From Asterias rubens (taxonomy: Eukaryota), in contig NC_047081.1 of assembly GCF_902459465.1 (NCBI RefSeq), forward strand, positions 11,656,001-11,720,000: a stretch of 64,000 bases of DNA, written 5' to 3'. The notes under the pieces were generated by a model that was not told where the DNA came from, searched no databases, and was given only the letters and a program-made list of their open reading frames with translations. This document shows positions 11,969-35,743 of the stretch, piece after piece (position 1 is the stretch's first letter; each line of letters starts with the position of its first letter). A program made the position numbers and the translations under genes.

Positions 11969-14407
11969 TTAATATTTGGATCTTTCGAACCATCTTAGCT
12001 TGTGGGTGTGGTTAGTATCAGGGTAGCTCCCCCAACGTCCAAAAGGAACTACAATTATACTTGAGTTATCGTCGCTACCAAACTGAAGTGCTTGATCAGC
12101 AACAAAGTTTGCAGCTGATGGAGGGTCATGACATTGGCCAATGGAGTCGCATAGTTCCTGGTCGGTCATTACGGACGTGATACCATCGGTGACCATGACT
12201 AACATACTGTCTTTGCTGTGTTTTACCTGTTGGGTAATCAAGACAAATGGTTATTTGGAGATCAATTATTTACTACACTTTGGTATGAAATTCAATACTG
12301 CAGGTGGGTAGAAACAACCCAACTCATGTGGGATTCGAACCTAAGACCTGCCACATAGACTTCTTAATCTAGGACTCATTATAATGCTCAAGCAGAAAAT
12401 ATTGCTTAGCAATTTTCTGCTAGGCAGAAATAAGCAGGATACCTGCCACAAATTTTACTTGAAACATGGTAGTTTGGCTGGTAACCTTATACTGGTAAGC
12501 ACAGTTTTTATGTGCTTAAGAAGCTCTGTAATATCTCACCTCGACTGATTTTGTCTCTGGTTGTGCCGTGACGCCATACCTCTTCAATGATTCGTCACCA
12601 ATACTCCTGGTCATTGTCAAGACACTATTGACCAATGGTCTGCCATACTGGTTCCACCTTCAATAAAACAATAATACAATGGTCAGTTTCAGTTCTTAAC
12701 CCAAAATGTACAGAAAGAAATTGATCCCCAAAATCATGGATCATGGGTAAGTTTTGTATCTGCTAAGGTGGTGGGTTCGAATCCCACCCTCATAATATGC
12801 CTGTGATATGTTTTTTATTGGACTCGGGGGGAAAGTACTGAGTGTACATTGGTGTATTTGTAAAAAAACAAAATTAACATCTGCAGGGAGTCAATACTTA
12901 CGTAATGAATCCATTGCAGGCTTCTATTCTTTCTCGTTCAGCTTCGTCTTCGGGGTCGTGCTTGCGTGTGAGTCTCATGGCTTTCCCCTTACGGCACAGG
13001 ATCGCTCGACTGTCGCCAGCACTGGCAACGACCAGTTCGTTTCCATTACGGAGTAGACCGACTGTCGCAGTGGTTCCTGTGTTTTCCATGACTGGATCTA
13101 AGATGAGAAAGAATCAATTAAAAGCCAATCTGAAGAAGCTCCTAGCTTACGTTGTAGGAGTGAAACGTAACTGAAATAATAGTCAATAAAATCTCAACAT
13201 TACATTGTTTTGGGGATCAAAAAACGAACCTCATAATCCATTATTAAAAGCACTACTACAATATTGCAACCTTCATCATTATATTCCCCTTGTACAGCAG
13301 TAAAAATCAATACTGATTCCCATGATAATAAAAACGGGGCCAGACTATTGCATTGATTAGAATTTAGCAGTGATTACTCAGTCCAACAGAAACAGACAAA
13401 TGACCAAGTTATTTGGATGGTTCGGTGAAGCTAGGGTAAGAGAATCACCAGGCCTTGAATGTCGTTCTTGATATGGGCACAGAAATGTTCCTCTGGTGGT
13501 AAGGGGCACTTCTATGAGGAAAATTTGTATTGGAACTTTGCAAAGGACACATCAGCAAAAGCACAGGGCACCACGGCAATCACTGTGGGTGTCATGGGTT
13601 ATTTAGAGGTCTGGCGTCGATTTCACAAAGAGTTAGGACTCATCTTAGGATTAATCTTAAGGTCTGCATGCTTCAGTGCAGGGTTGGGACTCGTCCTAAG
13701 TCCTAAGATTAGTCTAAAGTTAGAAAGAGTTTTGTGAAATCGACGGCTGCATCACCTTTTAGTTCTATATGAAGGTGTCTTGCAAACCGGTTTTCCAGGT
13801 CTTCAAAGGCTCGGGTCAGCACAACCTGGAGATCATGTTCCTTTGCTAGCCAGTAGTTGATATGCTTGTCCATGTGCAAACAAGCATAATCCGCTGCAAC
13901 AGCACCCCCGTGCCCATCGAATATCCCAAAGTACAGAAGATTTGGTGCGAGTTCTAGAATACTGATGCGGTCCTCGTTCGTCATGCGGCGTCCGATCAGC
14001 GACTCCTTGCCGACATTGGAGATAGAAATCTTTGGAATTGGAATCCCATGTTTGATACTTTGCTGAAGAAGAATGGGCTCTTGGATTCGACCCTGCCACG
14101 TACCAAGGCTGTCCCATTCAGGATTGTCTGAGCTATTATGTGAAGAACAAAATCTTATCGATGAGTAGTGAGGTCTATGATGTCTGCTTCTTATACAAAA
14201 ACCGAGTGTTGCTCGATAGTAAATGTGACCAGCCTCATAATAAGTTCTCCTGTATAAATAGTTTGAGTTTGTTTTAAAATCCGGCAGATGCGTCTTCAAG
14301 CTTTTACATTTGTTGAGAGTTGAGATGTTTCTATGTTGAGAATCGTTTAAGCATCTTCTCTGGAGACATCTGGAAAAGACGCTCATTAGTCTGCTGGACC
14401 TCATCAT
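11969..14407 (-). CDS. PPM1K: Mitochondrial protein phosphatase 1K (PP2Cm, BCKDH phosphatase), about 407 aa. Exons (minus): 14407-13756, 13097-12902, 12657-12540, 12226-11969
   Basis: Basic N-terminal transit-peptide-like segment; PPM1K-type [29 protein letters not shown]; PP2C motifs [47 protein letters not shown]. Phases 1,2,0 are consistent. The first in-frame ATG is at 14407 (the ORF track starts at a TTG). An acceptor at 14429-14430 implies an upstream non-coding exon. Confidence 0.96.
12385..12530. mobile_element. Partial MITE (same family as 3001-3190)
   Basis: Shared internal sequence aagcagaaaatattgcttagc...ggtagtttggctggtaacc. Confidence 0.7.
12755..12885 (+). mobile_element. tRNA-derived SINE fragment
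   Basis: B-box ggttcgaatcccacc and body similar to the element at 72-235. Confidence 0.65.
13616..13744. mobile_element. MITE starting about 12 nt inside PPM1K intron 1
   Basis: 14-bp TIR gtcgatttcacaaa / tttgtgaaatcgac. Confidence 0.75.
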
Positions 14408-14429
14408 CCTCAATCCTTCTGCGGCAAAC

Positions 14430-15897: not shown

Positions 15898-18800
15898 ATG
15901 CGTAGCAGACCTTTTGGTGCCACTTTGGGCCTAGTTTTGGGAGTTTTACTGCGTGGATGTGCAACATGTGTAGCAGGTGAGTAGCCGGTAATTTTACCGT
16001 ACTTGAGGGGTGTGTGCAACGGGGCGTTGCGGAACTTTGGACGGCGGTGCCTTGTCGTCTTTCTCGCGGTGCTCATCAATGGGTGATTATTGGGGCGTGT
16101 GTGATTACATGTGTTTTTGTGCATGGATGATTCGGCGCGGTGGTGGTTGGTGGGATATTGGGGTTGTGTATTATTATCACGGAGGTAGAACAATTACCTC
16201 TCCGTATAAATAATAAAGGGATTTAAAAAAACATTTAAAAAACATTAATAAGTTGATAAAATGGGGAATTATAAATATTAGTAATACTATATAGGCTAAT
16301 ATTAATAATTAAATATAAAAATATAAACAATAAAAATGGCTTTTAATTAATAAATAAAATATGTGAGGGTGGTGATCCTATATATTTTCTCTTTTACAGT
16401 TTGTATAAGATAATTTATTGTAGTCCTACAGTGTACACCTTTTGTGAAGTTTGTGAAATACAAAAAAAGGTAATAACCGGTGGTACCTAGTTGTTCGATT
16501 ATCATTTATTCAAATTTAAATTAAAATGTTGTTCAATAAAGGTGCCCTTTACTAAGGACACCTTAATAATTCCATTCTAGGTGTAAAATACATCATTCAG
16601 TTAAATCTATAATCTAGCCCAACCTTGTGCTATTTATTGTTCCCTTTTAATATCATAGTCGCCATTACAAAAAAATAAATGATGAGACAATAAAAGAGAA
16701 CCAACCTAGTGCTCAGGTATCGGAGACGGACAAGACTGTGACAATCCTAGCGTATGCTTGGTCACGTTCCTTAGACTGTTGGGATGATCAAGGGTTACAA
16801 TTATGCAACATGGCATTCCCGGAATTTAAAGAGACCCAGTGAAATACAAAACACATCTGTTGATTATAAATCAATATAAACAATAACAAATCTAATATAG
16901 AATCTAGATTATGTTTTCTGCTCAAAAAAATCAATACAAAATGTGCACGCATGAATATTAATTAAACAAGTTCTTGTGAAAGTCACAGAATTTTTCTAAA
17001 AGAATTTAGAAAAAAAGGTAATGTATGTTTCACATTTGTTTTTAAATGAAGTCCAGTGGGGCACCATTATTGAAATTGAATGGTCATCTGTACAAATTCA
17101 CGGACATCTTTACTGTCATTGATTTTCCTTTGTTACACAAAATATGCACAAATGATGAAAATCGCACATTGTACCTATACAAACTTTAAAGGGTGTCAAT
17201 TTTACACATTACAAAACGTAAACAGCGTAATGTTTTCTCAACATCTCCTTGAGTCTTCCAATTGTCTTAAGAGAATTAAGCAGTCACCAAAGGGTGATGT
17301 CAAAATCTGTCATTTGGTATTTCTGGTAGTGATGCACAGAGGCTCTCCTGAAATAGTTGGGAGGTTTCGTGTCTACAATTTTTACATTTAAATACACAAA
17401 ATCTCATCCCTATTTGCATGGAGCATCACTGTTGTAGCATAAAGCATTAGCCAGCAGTGACCAGTTAGCTTGTCAATTCACTAGCCCATCACCCTTTTCA
17501 CTGGTCCATACATGTATTTCAATTGAAGTAGGCATGCTTTTCAACACTGAACTAGCCAGTCAAACCACTTGGGAGTGAATTCTGACTGGGTATCTGACCG
17601 GGTATTTTAACTGGCATTTGGCCAGCTGAAGGAAGAATGCTGTATTGTACAAAGTCCACCTTTAACTTTAAAAGCAATTTACTTCACTGTACCCGGATAA
17701 TGGTTTGAAATCTGCATTGCATTGCTGTACATCATTTGCTCCTCATGATGCATCCTGCATCCAGAACGCATCACGAGCGCAGCATCTCACCAAAATTAGC
17801 CTCCATTTTCATCAATATCAAGTACTCCGATTGAATCAAATGGCCTTCCTTGTCTGTCTTTAAATTGATTAGTGCACCTTGCACTCTAGATGAAAATGAG
17901 GGGTTGGGGGGGGCGCTTTCCACCTGCTCACAAACCACATGCAGCCCATCAAGATCCATCATCAAATTTTGCGAGGACTTAAATGGCCTTGAGCGAAGCG
18001 AAATTACAGCTCACCATCATTTCTGACCTTGTTGCATTTTCCTGAAAATACGTAGAGGGTTGATTTTGGATGATGGCCGAGGTAAATCGTGCATCAATGA
18101 AATTGATTGGGCGATTGGATGTGTAATGAATCATGAACAAGCGTACGTGTAGTATCAACCATCCGTGTGTAAATCTTGTGTAACATAAGCAGAGATTTTT
18201 CATTATGAGTTTAGGCTTGCCCAATTTATTCTTTTTTTTTTTTACATTATTTATGTGTTACATTACAAGTCTCAAAATAACCCACGGCACCCACACCATC
18301 TGCCCTTTGCAAAGTTCCGATACAAATTTGCATTTTCCTCATACATGTAGAAGAGCCCCCTTACCAGTGAAAAATTGACTGTCCCTTTAAAGCTAAGTTC
18401 AAGGCCTGACAGTACCACATTTCAAACTGAATTTAAAAAAAATGGAAAACTAACAAAAACAAGATTTTTTTTTTAAATCATCCAACACTACCGTTGGGCG
18501 TTTATCTGCAGATAAACTAATTGTTTTTTTAATTTTACTGGTTTTTAAATCATTAATTTTTTTATTTCCTACAGTAAGTGGTTTATGTAGTGTAGGCCAG
18601 GTGCTTTGTATTGTTATTAATTTATTGCAGACCAAGTAATAAAAACCCAAGGGAAACTTGCTGGTTAGGTTTGTATAAAATTAATTGTATGTGTCAGGAC
18701 AAAATATAATTGAGTAGAATAGGATTTTAATTTGCAACATGGGGATTGAATGCTAATTGCATTGTTTACAGACTCAGAACATACGTTGGTAAGACCCCGC

Positions 18801-21800
18801 AATTATTGTGTAATTTTTATCAAAAAGCCTGACATGGGGATACACATTTTAGGCCATTTTGTAGCCATTTTGCTTCAAAACTGAGGCTGCAAGGATAAAA
18901 CAATTCGGACCTTATCAACATGTTGTAGTCATGTTATTACCTTGTGTGAGCCTCAAGATTCATTAGTGAGAACATAACTGGGAACAAGACAAATACTTAT
19001 AATCTGCAGAGTAAAGATATAGCCGGGTGTTCTTGGACGGAATCTAGATTTGTTGTTCCACTTGAAAGTTGGATCACAAAGAAACCTTGACTGAAGACTA
19101 ACTGATTAAAATTTTGTGCAGTCAATCTGTAGTAAATTCAATGCAGTTGTATGCAAACCACATTGATGTGAAATTGTTGCCCGGGGAAAAAACAGAATAA
19201 AACAATTGTGACATCCGTCAGAGACATAATTATTGATTCGATTTGATGAGTTATTTTCTTGAGTGTCTGTCTGAGTGAGAATTTTCACAGTCTGCCTGTC
19301 TGGTGACATCATGCAGCAGGTTTATAATGTACAGGCAGAATGCCTTAGAGGGGAATTCTTTTTTGAAATGGCTACAATAACTTGCTCAGTTTGCACAGGA
19401 GGCTATAATTGGCAGCCGTGAAGAGTGAGGCTTGGAATATAGGCATCTCTGAATTAGTCTGTGTGGTGAAAGCAGACAAGTCTGCATTTCGGTGTATGCA
19501 GTGATTCTAAAACAACTTGTAGCTGTCTGGAGAGGAGACTAGTTATGATGGGTTTTATATTAAAACAGCAGAAAATACTGCATCTAGGGAATCTGTGGAT
19601 GCAGTGATTCTAAAACAACTTGTAGCTGGCTTGAGTGAAGACTTGTTATGATGGGTTTATTCAAAAATCAGTGATTTTAAAACAACTTGTAGCTGGCTGG
19701 GAAAAGACTCAGTTATGATGGGTTTATTCAAAAAGCACTGATTCCCTGACTCTAAAACACTTGTAGCTGGCTGGAGAGGAGGCAAGTTGAGATGGGTTGG
19801 TGTATATTCCAAGCCCTGTGCTAGATTAGAAAGCTTACAAGACTGCAAAGGGAGTCTGCGGACTCAGCCATTCTAAAACCACTTGTAGTTGGCTGAAGAA
19901 GAGACTAGTTATGATGGCCATGGTTTATTAAAAAAGCAGACAAGACTGCATAGGGAGTCTGTGGACGCAGTGATTCTAAAACAACTTGTAGCTGGCTGAA
20001 GCTATGTGTGGCTTTATTAATGGAGATTATCTGCTGAAAGGTTCATATGGTTCATGGCTGATAACAATTCAAATGTACACTCTGCATACACTACAACACA
20101 AACTAACCCACAAATTTCTTGAACTCTAGACTTACATGTGTACATAAATCAACATTTTTTCTTCCAAACAACATTTTGTTAAAGGAATAAAAATCAAACA
20201 AATACAGAACCCATTGGAGCGTAGATCTAACCACAACACAAACAGGTAACAGTTTCTCCACTCCAACAGAGCCCAGGTTAAGTACTCAGTTCTAGACTAT
20301 TCCCCTATTTGTTGTTTCTTTTTTAAAAAGAGAAGTTTGACCTTTTAAAAACCCAGCGTTTATTGAGCTACTGCTGATTGTTTATTTATGGAGCCCAATA
20401 CGAATGTCAGGGTTGACTAGCGGGTTGAAGGCTCACCCGCCAATCTTTACAGCAGTCTCTCTCTCGGACTGATAAAACACAAAGAAAGACTTTTTAATTA
20501 GATTTGCAGACCTTCAGGTTGGGTTATTTGAAATTGAAGTGGACAGGAATGCCGTCTTGGGTTTCTGAGAGAGTACATTCTCTCTAAAGGCTCAATGTAT
20601 GTCTCAAAAGGAAATACCATGATGTAACCAGAGGGGGTGCAGGTGTGGGAGGCCCCCCCCCCCCAAAAAAAAAAAAAAATTAAAAAAAATTAAGATCAAA
20701 AGAAATCAAAAATGAATGGTTCAATACAGCCCCTTCTCCAAATTGTGTCTTTTGCCCCCGCAAATGGCAATGCAAGGCAATGACCAGGGGCACATCGTCA
20801 AACTTTTCATTCATAATGGGATTGACCAAATAAATTTCTTTTCTGTTTCATTTTTTATCATTTCAGGTTCATCTTGCCAGGATATAAGTTTAGACTATTG
20901 TAGAACGCTGCCGTACACGCAGACAGGGACGCCAAATATGTTTGGATATAACTCTCAGGAAGATCTGCCAGTCCACCTTGGTTCTTCATTCCAGACATTA
21001 GTTTACATCGGTTGCTATGAGAACCTCCATCTCTTCCTGTGTGCTGCGGCTTTCCCACAATGCACCTCTGATGGAGAGATGCTCCCCCCGTGTCGTTACC
21101 TTTGCGATGACTCATTTGAAAAGTGTGGACGCGTCCTACTTTTCTACCCAGATATATATCAAAATTTAAACTGTCACGAAATGCCAAACTCTACTGATCC
21201 GAATGTCTGTGTTGGATTGGACACCCCTAAGCAAAATGAAACAAGAGAGAGAACCACTGACAGTTTATCCAGTTATGAGACAACAGCAATTACCAAGATT
21301 ACAAACACCGAAATTTACACAAGTTTGGACACTTTGTTAGCCACTACATCGCAACCAGAGACCACACCCCTTGAGGATGCAGAAAAAAATGCAGCAAATA
21401 GCACTTTGGTGAATTTGACATTGTCTGACTCGGAGGTCGAAGGGCAGAGGTCAACTGAGAGCAGAGGGGAGGAGAAGTGGACAGACAGTGTGGACAAATC
21501 TGTGAAGACAGGTGACCTGTTTAATCAAAGTATGTCAAAGGTCAAATGCTAAAAATGGTCTTTACTGTAAACTTTAAAACAAGTATCAAACTAAATTTTG
21601 GAATATGACAAACAAATTCTTCTGTAAAAATTGTAACAATACGATGATCTTTGGCGTTTCTAGCATTTTTCCTGATTGTGTGTGTACATAGGATCATTGT
21701 ACTTCTTGTGTATACATGATTAATTGTGTAATATTGTAGGTGAAGTTTGTGGTAGCACCATGTGTAAATCTCATTTGAGTAGTGTTGGTTCTGATGAAAA

Positions 21801-24800
21801 GAAGTGTTTGACTCAACGTATCAATCAGTATGCTCTGATCATCTAGCTTATCTGTCACCCAGTTTATCCTGTCGCCCAGCTTATCCTAATCCTGTTCCTG
21901 CCTTCATGCACCATCGAGCCCAGCCCAACTACCAGTTTATCTCCAAAGCAGTACTTAAGCTGCACCTAGCAACAGAGTCCAGCATTCTCCTGAAGACAAT
22001 CAGAGCACTGATCAATACGGAGTTATCAACCAGCGAACTGGTTCTTTTCAGAACCAACACTGCTCAAAAGAGATTTACACATGGTATTACCGCAAACCTC
22101 ACTGAATTATACTTCCACCTTGCAAAGTTTCAAATTCTACTTTTTTGTGTAACACTATTTTTTTTTACTGATTGAGCTGTGTCAGTACCTGATTTTGGAT
22201 TTTTCTGGGAAGTGAAGTAAAAATTAATCTTTTTGGGTCACTGTTTTGTATTAATTGTCTACAGGTGGTTCCCACAACACTGTCCCATCTCTTGGGATCG
22301 TTCTCAGTACACTCTCCGCTGTGGGCATGGTGGTACTTCTGCTATTCTGCGCATTCTTCAAGTAGGTATAATTTTATCAAATTTATTCAAACAAATTTAA
22401 CTGATTTTACAAGTAATAAACCACAAGGGAAACTGCCTTTTTGGGTAGATTTTTTTTTAAATATTTTTGTCAACGTTATAATGTTTCCCTTTTAACACCA
22501 GCCTGAAAGGTACTTTTAAAAAAAACTGAAAATCTTGCCTTTGTCATGTCACAATCTGTTTCATTGTGCAAAGGTTTTTAACATTTTTTTACACCTTTTC
22601 ATGATGTTTTGACATTTACTTTCTATTGTGATGCATTACGCCACAACACCTTGTAAACCATTACATGCTGCTATGTAAAAGGAGTAGGTCTCATAATTCA
22701 AACATAGTCCAACATACCTTTTATGAAATTATTGTATGTTAAAGCGCCTTGAGCGTCACTAAATGACGTATATGCGCGCTATTTAAGAAGTCGCGTTTAT
22801 TATTTATATGTCAAAGGAGACTGGTAGAGCACCCTCAAATGTCCAGCTGAAACAATTAAACATTTTTAATCTTCAGTCTCTAGAAGTTTTAAACCTATCT
22901 AAATAACCATCATTGATATCTATTGAAAGGTGTACTATTCCAAAACTAATATATCATTCATTCACCCTGTACAATCTGGCATTCCCAAAGAGTGTTCAAA
23001 CAAGCGTGACATTTCATTCATGCTTGTTTTCTTACATTGTTTCCATAAGCCAGCGGTAGCATAACTTGTTCAAGGTCGGAAATTGTTCAAGGTATTTGAA
23101 AAAGCACGCCACTTAAATTTCATTCAGGTTTCTTTTAGCAAAATATTTACCCTCAAGGTGTGAAATTTTGCACCAAGAAAACCAGGTTTCTTTTTCTAAA
23201 TGACAAAAAATAACATTGACTATTTGGCGCTTTATGTCTTTATTGAATTTATGTTGGGTTTCCCACATGTCTCAGTAAAACTGCATGGAAATTCAAGAAT
23301 CCGATTTTTTTTTTTTTTTTCTTTTTTCCTCAAAATCTAAAATCTTAAAAAAACTGTACCTTGTGTACTAGATTTAGCCTTTGTACCACTGCCCTTGAAA
23401 ATGTTCCTACTTGTTTTCAAGGGCCAAATATCATGCCTGGTTTGTGTTGTTGAAGCAAAAATAATTTACACACGGACAGCAATATTCTTTCAGATACTGA
23501 TGGAAGGGGAAACACAGTAATGGCCCATCCTTATTCCTCACAGCTAGCCACCTCAGGCATAGAATTACAATTTGGGAAATCAACAGGGACTGTGGCACTC
23601 ATGTTAATGTTGCTTGCTTTCTACGTGCCCCAACTCCTTCAAACGCAACCCCCCCCCCTTCAACAGCATATTTGTGCCTCCAAACCTTTTAAGACAATTT
23701 GCGCTCAAACGTGTATGTACATGTACATAGGCGATCCTTCTTAAATGCGTATGGACCATCTTGAAAGGTTTTCTTAAGATGAGTTATCCCGTTACAGTGT
23801 CTATCTCGATACAACGTGATCAGGTGTGAAGAAACAAGTGTTCCGTGTGCCCTAATGGAGATTTCTCCTTTAACATGATATGCGCATGTAGAGAAAATGG
23901 ATGGAGTTTCAAACCCTCTTTAGACTGGTCTCTTTGTCGTATCCCCAGCTGAGCCAAAATGGCACAATGGAACTATGCGAAAGACATTGAAAACAAAACT
24001 GATAATCTTACAATGTCCCACTTTATCACACCTGAAGGGCGTATCAAAGTGCTCAGTATTTGTTTTCGTGCAAGGTATGCGAAGCAACAATTTCGAAGTA
24101 TGAGACCCTTACCTTTAAAAGCATGTAATGGTTTACAAAGTAAATCGTCCTTGCACCATTTTTAGGGTGCGAGTGAGTTAGCTTGAATACACAGAATACA
24201 CAGTTTATTACTAATTTTAACATGCTCATTTAATATTTGTGGAATTTTGTTTATATTCATCAAAAACCCATTTCAAATGTTATGAATTGCATATTTTGTT
24301 GCTCTATATTGTGTATATTTTTTTCTCATCATGTACTTTATTTAATGCACTTTTTATTTTTGCATTTTTGTATATTGATTGTCTCATTTTAAATTGAATT
24401 GCATTTTGTTGTTTCATTATATGCTGTGTATTTTTTGCTAATCTAGTACTTTATTTGATGCATTTGTATTTCTGTTCGTGTGTATTTTTATTGTATCAAA
24501 TTCTAAATTGAATTGCATTTTTATTGCCTCATATTTTTTATGCTGTGCATTTAATCTTGTATTTTATTTTATTTAATGCATTTCTACATACGTGTGTATT
24601 TTCATTGTCTCATCATATTTCAAATTGAATTGCATTTTTACTGTTTGCTGTATTTTATGTCTTATCTTGTGTATTTCATTGTAAATCCAATTAGTATTTA
24701 ATTACAATTGTCTTGCATTGAATTGATGCAACAATTAATTGGATTATTGTTGCTTCTAATTATTCTCTTCACAGGTGCATTTTGTTACATTGTACATGAT

Positions 24801-26243
24801 TGCTTGTTTTTGATACTTCACTTAATTGACATTAGATTAATCAATTTATTTTAACTTTTAAAATATGTTAAAACTTGAAACTTCAATATATTTGGATTGT
24901 AATGATTAACTGTTGTTAGTTTGACATTTAAGGCACAACAAAGGTTGCCCATGTCATTTCCCTTAAAATTGACACATCACATTATTGTAAATTTACTTTG
25001 AATGTTGTTCTGAAGTATTTCATAAACTAATATTCAAAAAAAAAAAAAATTCTTTCAATGTATTTTTAACCTCTTAAAGTGCCTGGGGACCCTGTTTTAT
25101 TTTAAGTATGGTTTACAAAAATTGTTTATAATTATTATTACTGTTTAGGTCACAAAAGTTGTAGTGTAACTGAATCAATCCTTAGGCAGGCCTAACTAAA
25201 ATACATCAAACTACAATTTACTTCTTAAAAGAAATAATTATTTTCCCTCTCATTAATTTGTTTCTCCTCCTCCCTGTCTTACTTTTAGAAGTTCATTTGG
25301 AAAATCTTTTGGAAGACGGCGTAAACCGAGGGACTCTGCATTTTATACCAACCCGGCATTTGATGATCTACCTCAAAGAGGTCCAAGGAATGTGGTAAGA
25401 AAATAAATAACTGATCTGGGGTTGATTTAAAAAAATGAGTAGAGTTGGATTTAAAGTTCCTGGTGCTCTACCAACTGAGCTATCTAGCCCTCTAAATTAT
25501 AACTACGATATCAACATCATGGTCTTAGCAATTATTTCTAACAGTAGACGTTAATATTTCAAGGAATTTCTTGACAGAGTGTATCGTTTTGAAAAGACAG
25601 AATTTTTCTAAATGACAGCCCCTCAATGTACATCTGAGCTTGAAACTGGACCACAGGCCAGAATTTTTAACCCAAATTTACACAAAGTATTTTGTTTTTT
25701 AAATAAATTAGTGTTACCATGTCACAACAATGTTGTAGAATGATTTTTGTACTCTCCCTAACAAATTCCATTCATTTTATGTTTTTTTTTTAGAACGGGC
25801 AGTCGATGGACTCCAGACAAGAGCCATACACGCTAGACGATTTGCCGCCCCATCCTGCCAGTATCAATGGATCACATTATCAGCCAAGCCCCGCCCACAT
25901 GAACCCCTACCAGCAGGAACCAGGCGGATACACGCAACAAAATTTGTTCACCGTCTTGGATTCCTCTCATAAAACCACCTCAGAGTCAAATCCTAAAATT
26001 TCCCATTTCTCTAAAACGGATCGAACACACAGCATGGAAGAGGATTGCAGTGCGTCTGGCGATTTGGTTTATTCAAATAAAGTCACAATAGTTTCCATGG
26101 ATGCAAACGCAAATGAGCATGGTGCTGTTCAGGAGGGCGGGGCGAGACCTAGAGCGCCCTCTGTTGATGGGCCTCCACCCAGGGTGACGACAACTATGGA
26201 TAAAAACGATGATATGATCATTGCAAATCCCATCGCCTGTTGA
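15898..26243 (+). CDS. Unnamed type I single-pass membrane protein with Frizzled cysteine-rich domain, about 458 aa. Exons: 15898-15976 (signal peptide), 20867-21511 (CRD + Ser/Thr stalk), 22265-22361 (TM), 25289-25394, 25794-26243
   Basis: Exon 1 encodes MRSRPFGATLGLVLGVLLRGCATCVAG with donor CAG|GTGAGT (phase 1). Exon 2 has 10 Cys in FZ-CRD spacing (CQDISLDYC..LPY..T..PN..G...GCYENLHLFLC...PQC...PPCRYLC...EKC...NC...VC). TM segment LGIVLSTLSAVGMVVLLLFCAFF is followed by basic residues (RRRK). The spliced CDS is 1377 nt with no internal stop. Confidence 0.88.
19470..20000. repeat. Diverged tandem repeat, about 6 units of variable length (about 67-120 bp), core gcagtgattctaaaacaacttgtagctgg
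   Basis: The core recurs near 19498, 19601, 19668, 19745, 19864 and 19965. Confidence 0.85.
24240..24720. repeat. Diverged AT-rich tandem repeat, unit about 115 bp
   Basis: aaattgaattgcatttt anchors at about 24280, 24391, 24505 and 24622. Confidence 0.65.
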
Positions 26244-26919
26244 TGTTAAATATTTAAAAAATATTACTAATTTTTATAAATGGAATTCCATAAATTAATT
26301 TAACGTATTCCAGCTCGATGTAAATCAAAGAGGCTCATGGTGTTTTGTAATTTTTTTTAATTCGTGTTAAAATTGTGTTGGGTTTGATTTCTACAATTCC
26401 TCATAATTTTGTGTAACTTATCCTTGACATTCCAGTAATATAAAGTACTATACAAAAATTTTAAGATTATAAAATAATAACTACTCCTTGAAGACAGTGA
26501 TTCCAAGCAACAAAAGGGGATCAGGTTGGCTCAGTGGTTCTTCACCCTTCCTTTTTCATCTTGTGATCCCCATCTCAAACTTATGGTTTTTTTATCTTCT
26601 TCAACAATGACCCCTTTCAGTCCCTAGAGGAATGTTTTTTTTTACTCATTTTCAATTTCTTCCAGCGTCATTAAACATGAACGACTCACCTATTGTTATT
26701 GCAGTATTTCTTTTTTGTTAAAAGTTCATCAAATTGCTTTGCTCTAAAAACATTGGGTGCTAAACATTTATAACAATTTCAAAAATATATTTTTTCTTCT
26801 GATGAGCGAGAACAGTTGGGAATCTTAATTGCTAAGCAAAGTGTGATGTCACAATACACATCTCTATGGTGATATTGACAACTCTTAAAATTAATCTCAG
26901 TGCTTTGTGAAATTGGGCC

Positions 26920-27107
26920 AATGTCCCAGTTCCATATAGCTGCTTAAGCAGAAAATATTGCTGAACAATTTTGTCTGCTTAGCTGAAATGAGCAGTGTAC
27001 CAGTCACAAATTGTACCTGTGACATGGTAGTCTGGCTGGTGAACTTATTCTGGTAAGCATCATTTTGTTGTGCTTCTTGTGATTAAGCAGCTCTATGAAA
27101 TTGAGCA
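26920..27107. mobile_element. MITE (same family as 3001-3190) downstream of the FZ-CRD stop codon
   Basis: tagctgcttaagcagaaaatattgct ... aagcagctctatgaaattgagc. Confidence 0.75.
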
Positions 27108-29475: not shown

Positions 29476-32171
29476 TTAGCCCAAGACGTGAGTGAACGAT
29501 AGTGGATAATGTGTTGGGCCTGTTGTAAATTGTTAATGCGCCTTCTTATGGCATGATCTAACCAACAAGTAAAGTTGGTGAGTGTACTTGTCTTTGAAAA
29601 TTATCAAAAGTATGCCTTATACGAATTTACTGTACTCAAAACAAAGTAATTAGGACAAAAAGATCAAATTTATCATGAAAATGATACTGCCTCTTTATTA
29701 GAATGCAATAATTAATATAAAATGTATCTCAATTGAGTTCTCTGTGGTTAAGTTGCAATGAACATGCTGTATACAGATATACAATTTCCACTTACAATGT
29801 CACGGGTCAAAGGTCACGGCTCTGCTTGCCAATCATTCACTTTCCATGAACGGAGAATAGTGATAGTGAGTGCAAAACTTTATGGTAAGCAGAGCCAAGA
29901 AATCTTGTCCTAATTTGTACACTTTTTTTATCTGTCAGAAAAAAAACAAAAAGTTACCTAATTATTTAAAGATGTGAAAAGGCAAAAACAACAAAATTTA
30001 AATTACATGTTTATATACAATCATTTCCCATTCAAAAGTTAAGCTACACACCAATTCCAAAGAGTTGCTAAGTAGGAAATATTTTACTTATTTGCTGAGC
30101 AGGAAAAATACAGGGTACAAGTCACAAAGAGTATACATGTACATGGCATTTTGGCTGGTTAGCGGTTTCTGCTAAGTAATTATTGTGAACCATGCTAAGC
30201 AAATACTATCACACCTTCATGAAATCCAATAATGGCAGAAATATAAGGTACACAAATTCTCATTACAATTTAGCACATTTTTGTTACTTGTTTGAAACTC
30301 AATCAATGAAAGATGTTTTGAAAATGACAAGTGAAGAAAAAAAAAAGGATCTAAAACAGCATAAAATAATAGAAACGAAATTTAACTGATTTACAAAATG
30401 ACCGTTAACTTACGAACACAACTACATGTTACAATCCAAACAAGTTACAAGTTTTGGGTTGAGTTTTTTTTCTAGCAGTTTTACGCAACTTTCTTTTTAT
30501 ATCTTCAAGTTTAAAACATTTCAAAAACAAATATTAAACAATGTTGTCAATCGTATGAAAACAAATACACTTCTCAAAAGCACATTCTTGCCCAGATAAA
30601 TTCCCAATAATTCTAGCCAGGCAAAATTAAGTTGTCCTCCTCATTACAAGTCTTGATTTTAATCCATAATGGCCACAACCCATATTGGCTGCAAAAGGCC
30701 GCCACAGGTCTTTACTTGTTTCCACTGTTTTCCTTGTTAGCATAGTATCTACATTTCTAAAAAGAAACTAAATTTCTGATTCGTGTTCTCTTTCTGGACA
30801 TTTTTTCCATGTTTACTGCAAATATTTGAGCAAAAAATCATTTTAAAAAGCTTTCATTACTTGGCTTATCCTGATGACCGTACAGAAAAGAATTGTTTCT
30901 AAATTGTTATTAATGTTAATCATACAGATTAATTAAGACAGCCTATAAACTATAAACCTGGTACCAGCATTAATAATTTCCAAACGAGAAAAGTCTGTGT
31001 ATAGAGTGCCTCTAAATAATGTTCCGGTAAAATATTTTAAATCACTTGAAAAGAGGATCGAGGTCAGTGAAATGCAATAAGCAGTTAGTTCTTGATTTGA
31101 TGTTTTTGTCTTGTATCAATGGCTAAATTTATGAGAATGGTCAAGACAACAAAAAATTGTCAATGACCTGATGTTTTGACTATAGCAGACTTTAGCTTTG
31201 ACTCAACCAGCAATAATTTAGTTATTTTATGCATTTGCTGAATTTTTTAAGGAAGTTTTAGAGTTCTAGATTGAATTTGTCTGATATTAAGTGTGCCAAA
31301 AATAGCTCTCAGAAGTATACACAAATCAACATCCAACACATTTTCTAAATGCCTTTTCGATCATAGATCTTCTAAACAATTTAAGCGACAACGAAATTAT
31401 CTCCTCAAAAAAATGACACAGACGAAACTTCACTTTACTCATTGACAAATTACGTGTTCTATTTTAACTACTTGCAATTCTTACATGCAAATAACAAGTG
31501 TTTTCAATGTAAATACAGCATATTTATCTATTTACAATAAATCACACAATAGATTTAATAATCTAGTGTTTTTCCTTTTCTTATTAATCAGCGCCATTAT
31601 GACTGTTCTCATGTAATTTATCCATACTCAAAACGATAAAATAAAACTTCAAAAATTCCCTCCAAACATTTTCAGTTTTTCAGACGGTACCGATCAACCT
31701 GAACAATACTTTACACCCTCAAAAACAAAAATACTCAAAAAAGTGTCGCTCGACGTCTTAGCTTTTTGTCCACCAACGCAGACGATAAAACAGATACAAA
31801 TAAAAACGGAAATCTCACAGTCGATCTGATTCTAGAACATTAAGAAATACTTCTGAAAATACTCACTTGAAAAAAAATAATAATAACGGCACTAGTTCAA
31901 CGAGACTGTCAGTTTCTTTCCTTCTGTACTAGACTCTATAACTTTAATTAACATGAATTAGTTAAATACAAGTATTGAGCCATTTAATGGCATGACATCT
32001 GTCCCCCCCTAGCCCCCTTCCCCTTCTACTAAGGGACCAATAATCTTGTCCCTTTTTCCCCTTTAATTCAGAGCACCTCTGAGTCGTGTTATTACCCACT
32101 GTACAGACCCCTTTAAACAGGATCTCTACACAAATCAATAAAGCTGTACATACTATGACCAAAGCTGACTA

Positions 32172-35100
32172 TCATACCACGAAGCGACTCTTTGCCATTG
32201 AACCCGTCTTGGACATTGTGTCTGCGTGTGCCTGTAACAAACGAAGAGAGAACAAAAGTTAGGAATAATTGTGTCTGTGGTGTCTGTATCGAACAAAAAA
32301 AGAACGAGATTTAGAAATAATTGTGTCTACGTGTCCCAGTGCCTGTATCAAACCAGAGGAGCACAAGAATTGATAAAAACTCAAGGTCCTTCAACACTCT
32401 CCTATGGGACACAGTACTTTACGTAGCACTATGTTATGGTTTTCAAGATGCTGTGGCGTAATATGCAGCTAATCAAACCAGGAGCACTGTGGTGAACCCC
32501 TTCACTTTTTGATAAGTGCACTGGGTTCTTTTACGCATGGAACCAAGAGCTTTTTAGTGCACTTTTAAGTTTCCTGGGTTTGTGATTACATTTGATCCTG
32601 ATCCACAATAACAACCTATCCTCATGCGCTGTGAGGCGCGCAAACATGCTACTTTCAGTGACAACCTTGCTAATTCTTTGCCAATACCAAGCAACTCACT
32701 TGCTGACTGACAAGACCCAAGACTTAGGACCAACTTACCTCGTATGATATTAATGTCTTTGCTGGAAGACTGAGTCTTTCCTTGAATCCTTTCCTGTAAG
32801 AAAAACAATAGGATGAACAACATTACTTTAAAATCACAAGTGGGGAAACAATTTGGCAGTGAGAGGTGGTGCGTCAAGCTTTTTTTATACATGTTGGAGG
32901 ACACTACTACGGACAAATATTTCTGACTACTACGAACACAAAATTTCTCACCCAATTTTCATAATTCCATCTTCCTGTTTGTGGTTGCCTGTCCAGACAG
33001 AGATTTTGTTGCCCTTGCCTCGGACATTGATGACCCCACCGTTGACCAACTCTCCTTCATCATCACAAGACTCTCCGATAAGAAACAACAACTGAGGAAG
33101 AAAACAAAACTACATCTTATCACATTTGTTATATTAATAACCCCTGGAGTTATTTAAATGAATTTTGGTGGCTAGTAACCGCAGTGCTAGAAAAAAGATA
33201 TCAAAGAGCATGGTTTCTTTGTATCCGAATTTTTCCATAAACACAAACGGTCTCAATTCAGATTTATAAGTCTATAACTTCTGGACCCTGACGACACGGC
33301 ATTAAACGATAGGGGACTCGACCTTCTCCAATAAGGACCACGCCCTGTGGAATTCACTTCCTGATAGCTGCAGAAATACAAACTCATTTAATCATTCTAC
33401 GCTAGAACTGTTGAAGACCCACTTGTTTCGTTGACAGTGATTTATATTTCAGACCATCTTTAATTTAGGTTTGTTGATCTGTGCTGAACACATCCTAGCG
33501 CTTTGCAATCTCTGGATTGAAAAGAGGCTCTATAAATGCAAACCTATTATTATTTTATTTAAAGACACTCACCGATTCTAACCAATATCGATCGACATCT
33601 TGTGGCTTAACCCGTCCTAGATTGAGCAACCAACGTCCTCCTTTTCTGTTCTTGTCATCCTCCCACATGGGTTTGATTCCTTCCTGGAAAGTCAAAGGTC
33701 AAACAACAGGTCACAATAGTCTTCAATCAAGTCCATGTCTTTTCAGAACAAAGTGACAGACAGTCAAATCTGTTTAGGATCGGACCTACTGCAACACTTA
33801 GAGGGAATGTTTACGTTTGGTAATCACTCGTTTTCTGATAATTTCAGATGGGACGTAAAGCAGTAGGTCTTGTGTGTTATGTAATGCACATGCTCCGGTA
33901 TTTCTGGTTTGATTGGCTGCATATTGCGCCACAGCACCACAAAACACTGAAGTGCCATGAGCCTACACGGAGTGGTGGATTTGAGCGCCATAAAGGAGCC
34001 ACTTTTTTATGTTTATACACTTATCCAAAGTTAATAGGGTATGGTTGTTGAACCATGCCCATCAGCTGTGAGTAAAAACTGAGTCATTAATTATAAACTT
34101 TTTTTGTCATTTTGACGGACCTTGAACAGCGAGTAGTCACATCCTGATTGGAGTTTGCTGGCAGACTGGATATGGTTGAATAACCTACGAGGACAAAAAG
34201 TAAACAATAATGTCAACAAATCATTTATAAGAGTAACTAAAAATATAAACATGAATAGTAAACTTGCGGGTACAACCATGAGTAAAATCTCTTTTGAAGG
34301 AGTGATGGCTCTGAAAAGAGCTGGTTTGGTCTTGACGTTTATTTATAGTTTGCACTTCATTTCATTATTTGACTGTGAAGCCAAGTACTCTCAGACAAGC
34401 AAACTTAATCACTAGCCAAGAACCTAATGGATAGAAGACAAGAAGTACAAGCTTCAGTTTTAGATGTGGCAGCGAACCCCTTGAGAATTATTCCAAGGAA
34501 AACTCATGCAGTTAGGGTAGGGACTGAAAACCCAATCCATGCAATGCATCCAGCAGGATTTGAACCAATCACCTTCGGACTAACGTGCCGGTCAGTTACA
34601 ATTTACCAAGTCAGTTTCACTTGTGGTTTGTCGTGTTATACTTTTATTTCATTTCAACTTACGCCCAAAAGTCCTCAACGGTATCAAAGGCAGTGATAAC
34701 CCTAAGATTATCGGCCCAAGACTTTGTTTTATCGTTCTTGAAGAACCAAAGAGCCCACTTGTTCTGTAGAGGATGTTTGATCTCTTGTTCGGGTGTCAGA
34801 AGGGCAGACTCTGTCTCTTCTGTTTTAATTGTCTTCTTGTCGTGAGGGGTTTCCTGGTGAAAACAAAAAGTATCAGTATGGATTTTAAATCGTAAGAAAA
34901 CAATGGAAGCTAAAGGGGACATTATGTTCTTTAGACTACGTTTCTATGTTTCCCATAAACGTTCAGCACGGTTTTGATTTGATTTCCCTTTCAAAGTTTG
35001 CTTAGCTAAGTAAAGTCAAGTATCCATTCTGACTGTCGATAAATTAAGAAGAAGAAGACACTCTTTCAACTTTATTTTCTCAGTTCAACTAAAAAAATAT

Positions 35101-35743
35101 TATTTTAATTATTAAAAAGTCCAGCTGCTGGCTTTGCTTTAGTAAAAATGTCTTAGCCTCTGCTGCTCTTGACAACTTGATCATCTGATTCTGAGTCTGA
35201 TTTTGATCAATGAAGAATTCAGAATTGAATTGGTTAGGCTATCCTGGACCTGGCTAATCAAATTGATCATAAATTGATGATGAAAAGTAATTATTCCTCA
35301 AATGTACAGTTTCTAATAAAATGGAAACAATGCATAGTTAATCATGCTCATTTTACAAAGTACAGCATAGGGCCTACATGACAAATACAACATTCACACA
35401 CAGGGCGTGATCATCATGAACGAAAATGATAAAGACAGGCTGGTGCATAGGAATATTATAAAATTATAGTGCACAGTTACTGCTAGCAGCTGCAAGGCAC
35501 AGAGCGTACAGTGCATGTGCACCACACAATACGGTGACATTGCACGTGTAGTCGCGATTCATTATTTGGCACAAAAAACTCTGTTTTCATCCATTTTCCA
35601 ATGAACACCCTCCCTCAAATTTCATCTAAACATCACATACAGCCGTACATTTCAGAAATTCGTGTTCCTATTTACCAAAATTTAAATCTACTTCATACAA
35701 ACGGGGAAATTACCTCATGAGATATCGCCACTGCGGAGGCCAT
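32172..35743 (-). CDS. EIF4E: Eukaryotic translation initiation factor 4E (class I), 216 aa. Exons (minus): 35743-35714, 34853-34663, 34184-34121, 33683-33573, 33091-32952, 32793-32739, 32231-32172
   Basis: KHPLQNKWALWFFKNDK, FDTVEDFWALFNHI, GCDYSLFKEGIKPMWED, GGRW, INVRGKGNKISVWT and C-terminal KSRFVV. All eight canonical Trp residues are present. The 651-nt spliced CDS has consistent phases. Confidence 0.98.
34440..34600 (-). mobile_element. SINE fragment in eIF4E intron 2 (family also at 44160 and 56410)
   Basis: Shared gactgaaaacccaatccat and a reverse B-box-like ggatttgaacc. Confidence 0.6.

Follow-up and report, generated by a model that had tools for sequence, protein, structure and literature searches.

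A sea-star gene for a single-pass membrane protein with one Frizzled-type cysteine-rich domain and an NPxF tail motif, and its hemichordate relatives

The window analysed, 64,000 nt of Asterias rubens contig NC_047081.1, holds at 15898-26243 a real, expressed five-exon gene on the plus strand (Table 1). It is LOC117304057, a conserved and transcribed locus whose product, named only 'uncharacterized protein' in RefSeq, is predicted to be a type I membrane glycoprotein. A first-pass annotation, made from the DNA alone, had described a signal peptide, a cysteine-rich domain (CRD), a stalk, a transmembrane (TM) helix and a cytoplasmic tail, and each of these was found where it had been placed. All introns are GT-AG, and the ATG is preceded, 9 codons upstream, by an in-frame stop. 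Intron phases were derived by hand from exon lengths and boundaries, and residue numbers refer to the 464-aa isoform unless 458 aa is stated.

Table 1. Features of LOC117304057, in window coordinates
Feature	Position	Strand	Content and evidence
Exon 1	15898..15976	+	Signal peptide with its start codon (M1 to the first base of G27); intron in phase 1
Exon 2	20867..21529	+	CRD and stalk; phase 1 to 1; alternative donor 21511 gives 458-aa isoform X2
Fz CRD, C30 to C141, 10 Cys	20875..21210	+	Pfam, PDB matches, AF2, Foldseek
Conserved 27-residue stalk element SEVxGQRSTxSxGxxKxTDSxDKxVxT	21430..21510	+	Invariant alignment columns 215-241
Exon 3	22265..22361	+	TM helix 254-279; phase 1 to 2
Exon 4	25289..25394	+	Juxtamembrane basic cluster RRRKPR and YTNPAF (25344-25361); phase 2 to 0
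Exon 5	25794..26243	+	Distal tail: PYTLDDLPPHPAS, YQQEPGG..QNLF, DLVYSN, C-terminal ANPIAC, stop codon
3'UTR	26244..27050	+	Minimum extent, from RNA contigs

Both gene models exactly equal RefSeq isoforms X1 and X2 (protein records P0209, P0152). The 458-aa product first proposed is thus a RefSeq isoform, but the RNA contigs, which come from two related organisms, use the downstream donor; the resulting 464-aa form is the one that is both RNA-supported and evolutionarily conserved, and it adds DLFNQS with one more sequon. Three of the four exon junctions are directly confirmed by RNA: X2 record 8 spans 21529|22265, 22361|25289 and 25393|25793, and X3 record 14 links the last three exons and continues past the stop codon into the 3'UTR. 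Support for the exon 1-2 junction comes from phase, from identity to the RefSeq proteins and from the exon structure of Patiria; X3 record 13 and X4 record 19 extend a further 171 and 188 nt 5' of the exon-2 acceptor, compatible with exon 1 plus 5'UTR. Beyond window position 26400, X2 record 12 continues for ~650 nt and X3 record 14 for 125 nt. A search for extra exons that would give the architecture of a known family returned none, either in the RNA contigs (from upstream of exon 2 to the 3'UTR) or in orthologues; neither transcripts nor orthologues have 7TM, NTR, kinase, protease, CUB or LDLa exons, and the idea that a 7TM, kinase or protease portion lies hidden was rejected on these grounds.

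Hydropathy, AF2 helices and conservation are the basis for calling the signal peptide and the TM helix. An AF2 helix at residues 7-22 lies within the signal peptide, and the N-terminus is kept in Patiria and Acanthaster. The only other hydrophobic segment is the single TM helix, modelled by AF2 as a helix at 251-277 (458-aa numbering) with pLDDT ~88; the intron downstream of exon 3 interrupts the codon of the first basic residue past it.

That the ectodomain holds one complete ten-cysteine Frizzled-type CRD, as originally proposed, is borne out by every approach used. The Pfam match to PF01392 (E 1.8e-20; 74 bits, cut-off 32.1) covers 109 of 110 profile positions, the ten cysteines fall between residues 30 and 141, and the AF2 model of the domain has pLDDT 93-98. 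A PDB search returned the FZD10, FZD7 and FZD2 CRDs at E ~1e-17, and the best 47 Foldseek matches to the model are all FZD CRDs, with TM-scores of 0.66-0.82. With its ten cysteines and alpha-helical Fz fold the domain is a member of the Fz/CRD superfamily. Outside sea stars, the best single-CRD scores belong to CRDs of the hemichordates Saccoglossus and Glandiceps (86, 83 and 79 bits), while all remaining CRDs, those of 7TM Frizzleds included, score 72 bits or less. The sea-star and hemichordate CRDs have the signatures YTQTGFPN and LCAA in common. A CRD tree (84 domains, 120 columns) is too poorly resolved to fix the position of the clade; it is compatible with grouping these CRDs, though weakly, and, weakly too, puts the clade nearer to corin/MFRP-type CRDs than to those of 7TM Frizzleds.

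The stalk (approximately residues 144-250) had been called mucin-like. It is indeed Ser/Thr/Glu-rich (S+T 32%, D+E 18%) and predicted to be disordered (pLDDT <50), but the label is loose because the segment is Pro-poor (3%). Several N-glycosylation sequons had also been listed; only N134 and N204 are invariant across the three sea stars aligned. One 27-residue element of the stalk, ~13 residues outside the TM helix, is conserved (70% identity to Patiria by tblastx).

The tail is 185 aa long and predicted to be disordered (AF2 pLDDT <50), and it has no Pfam or PDB match, in agreement with the description of a low-complexity tail free of catalytic domains. The short motifs that had been pointed out are all there: YTNPAF at residues 299-304, YxN sites at 299 and 408, and the C-terminal NPIAC, preceded by an alanine. 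A pattern scan of the tail gave no KTxxxW, Yxx-phi, di-leucine or ITAM-like YxxL motif, and the protein does not end in ETxV. Motifs of the form [FY]xNPx[YF] recruit PTB adaptors, as in LDLR-like uptake signals. By chance such a motif arises in 0.5% of shuffled tails; the one here is nonetheless invariant in three sea-star genera, and it appears as FTNPAY at an equal distance from the membrane in three hemichordates.

Asterias amurensis, Patiria miniata (LOC119732499) and Acanthaster planci each have an orthologue, and the tail motifs do not vary among them. In the four sea-star species the reading frame is intact and both termini are alike. The Patiria gene has the same exon layout as that of Asterias and a syntenic eIF4E neighbour. 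Identity to Patiria and Acanthaster is 53-67% in the CRD and proximal tail and 35-41% in the stalk and distal tail, and among the substitutions listed from sister-species transcripts those in the CRD, TM helix and tail are mostly synonymous.

The nearest relatives outside sea stars are uncharacterised type I proteins of three hemichordates: Saccoglossus (LOC102805162), Glandiceps (LOC144452126) and Ptychodera flava (an uncharacterised protein with many isoforms). These bear 3-6 CRDs together with Sushi domains (and an EGF match in Glandiceps), whereas the sea-star gene has one CRD and a disordered stalk. Common to both are a signal peptide, Fz CRDs of the subtype carrying the two signatures above, one TM helix, and a tail in which A-x-[FY]TNPA[YF]-D lies ~20 residues past the membrane and is followed by PYQ[EQ]EP..[EQ]N. 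This pair of motifs, the first juxtamembrane and the second downstream of it, is present and collinear in three sea stars and three hemichordates, the latter tails reading FTNPAY and PYQEEP. Three features of the sea-star tails are missing from the hemichordate proteins (PYTLDDLPPHPAS, DLVYSN and the ANPIAC C-terminus); conversely, two of the three hemichordate tails (Saccoglossus and Ptychodera) have a second NPxY instead. BLASTP of the tail against hemichordates gave E 2e-7 and 4e-9, and hhalign of the cytoplasmic parts alone gave 82% probability (E 1e-5), a similarity that resides in short linear motifs.

Gene structures were compared for Asterias, Glandiceps (computed phases) and Patiria (layout). 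The phases of Asterias and Glandiceps are equal throughout: signal peptide to 1, CRD 1 to 1, TM 1 to 2, NPxY 2 to 0, the final exon also agreeing. The intron of the TM exon falls in the same codon in both, and the equivalent hemichordate exon carries FTNPAY. Each CRD exon and each Sushi exon of Glandiceps is a phase 1-1 cassette. Together the shared tail motifs and the Glandiceps exon phases lead us to consider the sea-star gene a one-CRD member of a family defined by CRD(s), one TM helix and a disordered tail with [FY]TNPA[YF] and PYQ[EQ]EP..[EQ]N. We hold the description of the gene and its family assignment, taken jointly, with high confidence.

On these sequence comparisons, the link between the sea-star gene and the acorn-worm multi-CRD proteins is new, and the family, as found here, appears only in ambulacrarians. 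Word-seeded HMMER searches with the Patiria tail (targets of 268-854 aa) and the Glandiceps tail (452-1438 aa) hit only the three sea-star and three hemichordate species; no members turned up in echinoids, holothuroids, ophiuroids or crinoids, although these are word-limited tail searches and absence is not shown. A tblastx comparison with the Glandiceps locus showed no traces in the Asterias introns of CRD, Sushi or EGF exons that might have been lost; it matched exon 2 alone. The first-pass annotation had held that none of the CRD families has this architecture. Genuine and complete as the architecture is, that claim calls for qualification: RefSeq already lists the protein, uncharacterised, and hemichordates possess related type I proteins with several CRDs. 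No paper mentioning LOC117304057, LOC119732499, LOC110988158, LOC102805162 or LOC144452126 was found; the protein is absent from the main-text listing of an Asterias coelomocyte surface proteome, and at the level of a list comparison the novel sea-urchin Fz-CRD genes (PMC5778778, Table S1) include no evident counterpart.

Among known CRD proteins, the class F GPCRs share the domain's sequence and fold: the FZD10, 7, 2, 1, 8 and 4 CRDs align at 30-33% identity with all ten cysteines, and the first wall of the lipid groove retains its character. Unlike Frizzleds, the protein has no match to the 7TM Frizzled domain (PF01534), and it has neither their ETxV nor their KTxxxW, the latter being the juxtamembrane Dishevelled-binding motif. 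Like the secreted Frizzled-related proteins (sFRPs) and the sea-urchin sFRP-1 (four CRDs plus Ig), the protein presents a CRD ectodomain free of catalytic or signalling domains; those, however, are secreted and carry NTR or Ig domains, whereas here there is no NTR match and the protein is membrane-anchored with a trafficking-type tail. ROR and MuSK carry an intracellular tyrosine kinase along with Ig and kringle domains; the sea-star tail, predicted to be disordered, matches nothing in Pfam or the PDB. Corin, MFRP and TMPRSS-like proteins are also membrane-anchored with Fz CRDs, and some of them also bear an N-terminal cytoplasmic YxNPxF, but they are type II proteins with protease, LDLa or CUB domains, none of which occurs in the sea-star protein with its N-terminal signal peptide and C-terminal TM helix. 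With PTB-adaptor cargo (the LDLR family, Sanpodo) it shares the motif class; ectodomain and topology are unrelated, making this a motif-level analogy and not homology. Finally, engineered GPI- or TM-anchored Frizzled CRDs reportedly trap Wnt/Wg without signalling. They are artificial and have no endocytic tail, but they place a CRD at the surface without a 7TM core, as here, and offer a functional precedent.

From these parts a mechanism may be sketched. The CRD would capture an extracellular ligand, with a lipid-modified protein such as Wnt the leading candidate. The tail NPxF, which is non-phosphorylatable, would recruit a PTB adaptor of the Numb/Dab2/ARH class, one that binds independently of phosphorylation, and the adaptor would link the receptor to uptake through clathrin/AP-2 or to sorting in endosomes. 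Having neither a 7TM core nor a Dishevelled-binding motif, the protein would clear or divert the ligand it captures instead of passing a signal along the canonical Frizzled route. The trafficking half is the stronger: YTNPAF is exactly the Numb-PTB-binding motif of Drosophila Sanpodo (PMC3882786, PMC6912373), and this identity makes adaptor-driven trafficking well founded and, in our judgement, probable. The initial claim of a PTB-adaptor motif thus stands at motif level, with uptake in cells as a candidate function; NPxY/F motifs also serve non-endocytic adaptors. For the mechanism as a whole, with a family receptor that captures ligand and is taken up or sorted through a PTB adaptor, we would put the chances as evenly balanced.

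The ligand is the more doubtful half. In Fz8 the acyl-binding groove is made by Q71, F72, P74, I78, M122, Y125, F127, W129 and P130, with W129 and P130 forming part of the acyl channel (PMC6873803). The first groove wall of the sea-star CRDs is Frizzled-like in character (S-F-x-T-L-x-x-I). In the second wall, which is still hydrophobic and aromatic, one residue is deleted and the near-invariant W-P (W129-P130 of Fz8) is replaced by I-Y or L-L, whereas the hemichordate CRDs of the family retain W-P. The replacement and deletion suggest that acyl binding in the sea-star CRDs may be altered or lost, and Wnt is a possible but rather unlikely ligand of the LOC117304057 CRD.

Alternatively, the protein could be a lineage-specific surface glycoprotein, acting in adhesion, matrix or microbial-lipid recognition, that reuses a mobile Fz-CRD module for a non-Wnt ligand or a structural role and needs its NPxF solely for its own turnover or polarised sorting. 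The lost W-P motif fits this, as do the weak tree affinity to corin/MFRP CRDs and the wide occurrence in other phyla of multi-CRD proteins of obscure role; moreover, many novel Fz-CRD genes of obscure function are known in echinoderms and CRDs are regarded as mobile units (PMC5778778). Yet the fold and first groove wall remain Frizzled-like, and sea-urchin sFRP-1, a similarly lineage-specific multi-CRD protein, does modulate Wnt signalling and patterning (PMC5778778). We consider this explanation improbable, though the best of the alternatives.

Slightly less credible is a signalling or scaffolding receptor, in which ligand would lead to phosphorylation of tail tyrosines (YxN at 299 and 408, YQQEP) and docking of Grb2-type SH2 or Shc/IRS-type PTB proteins, as in kinase-less co-receptors or CED-1/Draper-type receptors. 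The two YxN sites, the YQ[EQ]EP shared with hemichordates and the second NPxY of the Saccoglossus and Ptychodera tails would suit it. Shc/IRS PTB domains, however, require NPxpY, and sea stars have, in place of the canonical NPxY tyrosine, a Phe (NPAF) that cannot be phosphorylated; DLVYSN, for its part, is absent from hemichordates, and there is no kinase or ITAM-like YxxL. That the locus is an annotation artefact, a pseudogene or a piece of a larger Frizzled or corin gene is very improbable: the exon 1-2 junction is the only one without direct sight in RNA, but spliced contigs run from upstream of exon 2 to the 3'UTR without extra exons, a stop lies in frame 5' of the ATG, the frame is open in four species, and identity peaks in the CRD and proximal tail.

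Echinoderm and hemichordate embryos use gradients of Wnt to pattern their primary axis, and the known extracellular Wnt modulators there (sFRPs, Dkk, sea-urchin sFRP-1) are secreted. A CRD surface protein with an endocytic adaptor motif would, if the uptake mechanism is true, add cell-autonomous clearing or re-routing of ligand. Its boldest form, which we regard as unlikely, is that ambulacrarians have a dedicated class of membrane-tethered CRD receptors acting as cell-autonomous, constitutively internalised Wnt sinks, with the sea-star single-CRD form shaping Wnt gradients in embryonic axis patterning and regeneration through Numb/Dab2-type uptake; were it true, these would be natural counterparts of the engineered tethered-CRD dominant negatives. 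The gene would also be a neat case from nature of exon shuffling among CRDs, with phase 1-1 cassettes in Glandiceps and a single CRD cassette kept in the sea-star gene. Patiria miniata, which has an orthologue, is an established embryological model. Should the CRD prove not to bind Wnt, the family would still be an accessible example of how a Frizzled-type CRD is adapted to a different ligand.

Translation of the three forward frames gave five coding pieces between 15.7 and 26.4 kb, which canonical GT-AG sites unite into a single open frame; an in-frame stop codon lies upstream of the ATG, and the window contains no N runs. The two donors of exon 2 yield products of 458 aa (donor 21511) and 464 aa (donor 21529; extra DLFNQS). 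The 458-aa product is letter for letter XP_033644435.1, isoform X2 of 'uncharacterized protein LOC117304057' in Asterias rubens RefSeq, and the 464-aa product is isoform X1 (XP_033644434.1). The annotated span of LOC117304057, 10,346 bases on LR699111.1, equals 15898-26243 of the window.

Exons of the CRD gene and its neighbours in the window
Feature	Position	Strand	Basis
Exon 1	15898-15976	+	translation and GT-AG sites
Exon 2 (two donors)	20867-21511 or 20867-21529	+	translation and GT-AG sites
Exon 3	22265-22361	+	translation and GT-AG sites
Exon 4	25289-25394	+	translation and GT-AG sites
Exon 5	25794-26243	+	translation and GT-AG sites
eIF4E-family gene, downstream of CRD gene	about 32170-35740	-	synteny with Patiria miniata locus
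PP2C phosphatase gene, upstream of CRD gene	about 11970-14410	-	Asterias annotation
DUF2046 gene, upstream of CRD gene			Asterias annotation

Four RNA runs, taken from two closely related organisms, supplied contigs that were mapped to 20600-26400. One (X2 record 8) spans the junctions 21529/22265, 22361/25289 and 25393/25793, and so uses the donor of the 464-aa form; the spliced form proposed in the first-pass annotation is the 458-aa one. A second (X3 record 14) has exons 3-4-5 spliced and runs beyond the stop into the 3'UTR. Contigs beginning at the exon-2 acceptor have 171 and 188 bases more on their upstream side, which fits exon 1 with a 5'UTR, and we infer the exon 1-2 junction, which falls outside the mapped interval. 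No extra exons of the gene appear in these contigs over 20600-26400. Contig depth reaches the thousands inside introns 2 and 4 (21570-22150, 22540-22930, 25450-25640), in stretches with many loose ends on all sides and non-canonical 'joints', which we read as expressed interspersed repeats (transposon or SINE-like) and not as mRNA of the CRD gene. Intron 1 holds two similar translated segments about 370 bp apart (19523-19648 and 19889-19996), both reading ...EETSYDG...RESVDAVILKQLVAG, which points to a repeated element.

Pfam detects one full-length Fz domain in the protein (PF01392, E 1.8e-20) and no second domain. Among PDB sequences, the CRD matches those of Frizzled-10, -7, -2, -1, -8, -5, -3, -4 and -6, and sFRP3. 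In an AF2 model from a 68-row alignment the CRD has pLDDT 93-98, and its best 47 Foldseek matches in the PDB are all Frizzled CRDs (TM-score 0.66-0.82), among them FZD4-palmitoleate, FZD5-PAM and XWnt8-Fz8 entries. The stalk (Ser+Thr 32%, Asp+Glu 18%, Pro only 3%) and the cytoplasmic tail of about 185 residues are disordered in the model, and a single TM helix is confidently predicted. The tail has no relatives in Pfam or PDB, and no enzymatic or Dishevelled-binding element was found in it. Pfam, the AF2 model and the RNA contigs agree with the architecture first proposed, an Fz CRD, stalk, one TM helix and a tail without catalytic domain.

Orthologues occur in Asterias amurensis (93-98% identity by region), Patiria miniata (LOC119732499, 488 aa) and Acanthaster planci (LOC110988158, 503 aa); the exons of the Patiria locus are collinear one for one, and the downstream eIF4E gene is shared. 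Identity to Patiria and Acanthaster is greatest in the CRD (53-56%) and membrane-proximal tail (60-67%), against 35-41% in the stalk and distal tail. The tail bears invariant sea-star islands: RRRKPR..AFYTNPAF.DLPQ, PYTL[DE]DLPPHPAS, YQ.EP.G..QNLF, DLVYSN and C-terminal ANPIAC. Conservation of the NPxF motif, on which the earlier reading depended, is thus complete across these sea stars, and [FY]xNPx[YF] matches in only 0.5% of shuffles of the tail. Within the otherwise fast-evolving stalk, a 27-residue element (21430-21510, SEVxGQRSTxSxGxxKxTDSxDKxVxT) is near-invariant. It lies on the outer side of the TM helix, about 13 residues away, and may serve for shedding, glycosylation or interaction.

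Exon 2 was searched exhaustively with HMMER against 1.84 billion representatives; besides the Patiria protein, the matches included many proteins with multiple CRDs. Requiring one C-terminal TM helix and an NPxY-type motif kept three of the 150 best matches, all uncharacterised enteropneust proteins: Saccoglossus kowalevskii LOC102805162, Glandiceps talaboti LOC144452126 and a Ptychodera flava protein. Each combines 3-6 Fz CRDs with Sushi repeats, followed by a single TM helix and a tail. Unlike the sea-star proteins they lack the 27-residue stalk element, the ectodomain there being further folded domains (with an EGF match in Glandiceps). In their tails, A-V-FTNPAY-D stands 20 residues past the membrane and PYQEEP.....ENK[YL] further along, both collinear with sea-star AFYTNPAFD and YQQEPGG...QNLF; BLASTP of the tails yields E-values of 2e-7 and 4e-9, and hhalign of the cytoplasmic parts alone 82% probability (E 1e-5). 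As independent evidence, the Asterias CRD, compared domain by domain, scores highest outside sea stars against CRDs from these relatives (86, 83 and 79 bits), with which it shares YTQTGFPN and LCAA signatures; every other CRD, 7TM Frizzleds included, reaches at most 72 bits. The Glandiceps gene has a phase-1 intron after its signal-peptide exon, and each CRD or Sushi exon is a cassette with phase 1 at both ends; the TM exon (100 nt) starts in phase 1 and finishes in phase 2, and the NPxY exon (127 nt) starts in 2 and finishes in 0. Asterias phases, derived from exon lengths, are the same: 79 nt (ending in phase 1), 663 nt (1-1), 97 nt (1-2) and 106 nt (2-0), and the intron after the TM exon splits the same codon in both, that of the first basic residue past the helix. 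From tail motifs, alignment scores, CRD scores and gene structure we therefore read the sea-star gene as belonging to this family and as reduced to a single CRD cassette. Tail-only searches, seeded on shared 5-residue words, found no further members. Directly past the Glandiceps TM exon (OZ203286.1, 19717-19900) lie two partial tandem copies of its 3' half, both ending in GT and with G-rich spacers between, which may represent decayed duplicates or offer the TM exon alternative ends.

The acyl channel of Fz8 bound to XWnt8 is formed by Gln71, Phe72, Pro74, Ile78, Met122, Tyr125, Phe127 and Pro130, with Trp129 close by (PMC6873803), and related residues are required in FZD4 (PMC5458758). In CRD alignments the first groove wall is kept in character (S-F-Q-T-L-V-Y-I). 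The W-P of the second wall, however, near-invariant across 68 aligned CRDs and present in the hemichordate relatives, is replaced in sea stars by I-Y or L-L beside a one-residue deletion. In a poorly supported tree of 84 CRDs, those of sea stars and the membrane-proximal ones of hemichordates group with the CRDs of corin, TMPRSS-like proteins and MFRP and fall outside the 7TM Frizzled cluster, which is itself well supported. Wnt is therefore a plausible candidate ligand that the CRD may or may not bind, and a ligand of another kind has to be taken seriously.

The final position of the YTNPAF motif is Phe in sea stars, from which we infer recognition independent of phosphorylation. Such recognition would point to PTB domains of the Numb/Dab/ARH type and not the Shc/IRS type, and hence to probable trafficking by clathrin adaptors. 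YTNPAF is identical to the hexapeptide of Drosophila Sanpodo, a [FY]xNPx[YF] motif that binds the Numb PTB domain and so governs endosomal versus surface localisation (PMC3882786, PMC6912373). The Frizzled-type CRD, on its flexible glycosylated stalk, would bind an extracellular ligand; YTNPAF would recruit a Numb/Dab/ARH-type adaptor without phosphorylation, coupling the receptor to clathrin adaptors and active internalisation. Unable to signal like Frizzled, it may act as a sink or re-routing device, as first suggested. Four type II membrane CRD proteins among the exon-2 matches (P0094, P0073, P0135 and P0043; P0094 and P0043 annotated corin-like) have YxNPx[F] (YDNPLF, YENPLF, YDNPGF) in N-terminal cytoplasmic tails, so a PTB-type motif beside membrane CRDs arose more than once.

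We found no published account of a family of type I CRD receptors with NPxY/F tails, nor of any of these sea-star or hemichordate loci. Large uncharacterised proteins with 5-15 tandem Fz CRDs (P0001-P0017 and others among the exon-2 matches) occur in very diverse animals: shrimp (Penaeus), coral and octocoral (Montipora, Paramuricea), pearl oyster (Pinctada) and teleosts (Oryzias, Nothobranchius); the multi-CRD architecture recurs across distant animals. In sea urchins, at least 15 Fz-CRD genes are classed as 'novel' and without known function; one of them encodes the secreted four-CRD protein sFRP-1, a modulator of Wnt patterning along the anterior-posterior axis, and CRDs have been termed mobile evolutionary units (PMC5778778). 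A new echinoderm CRD architecture is thus no surprise in kind, and the proposed receptor role is testable in Patiria miniata.
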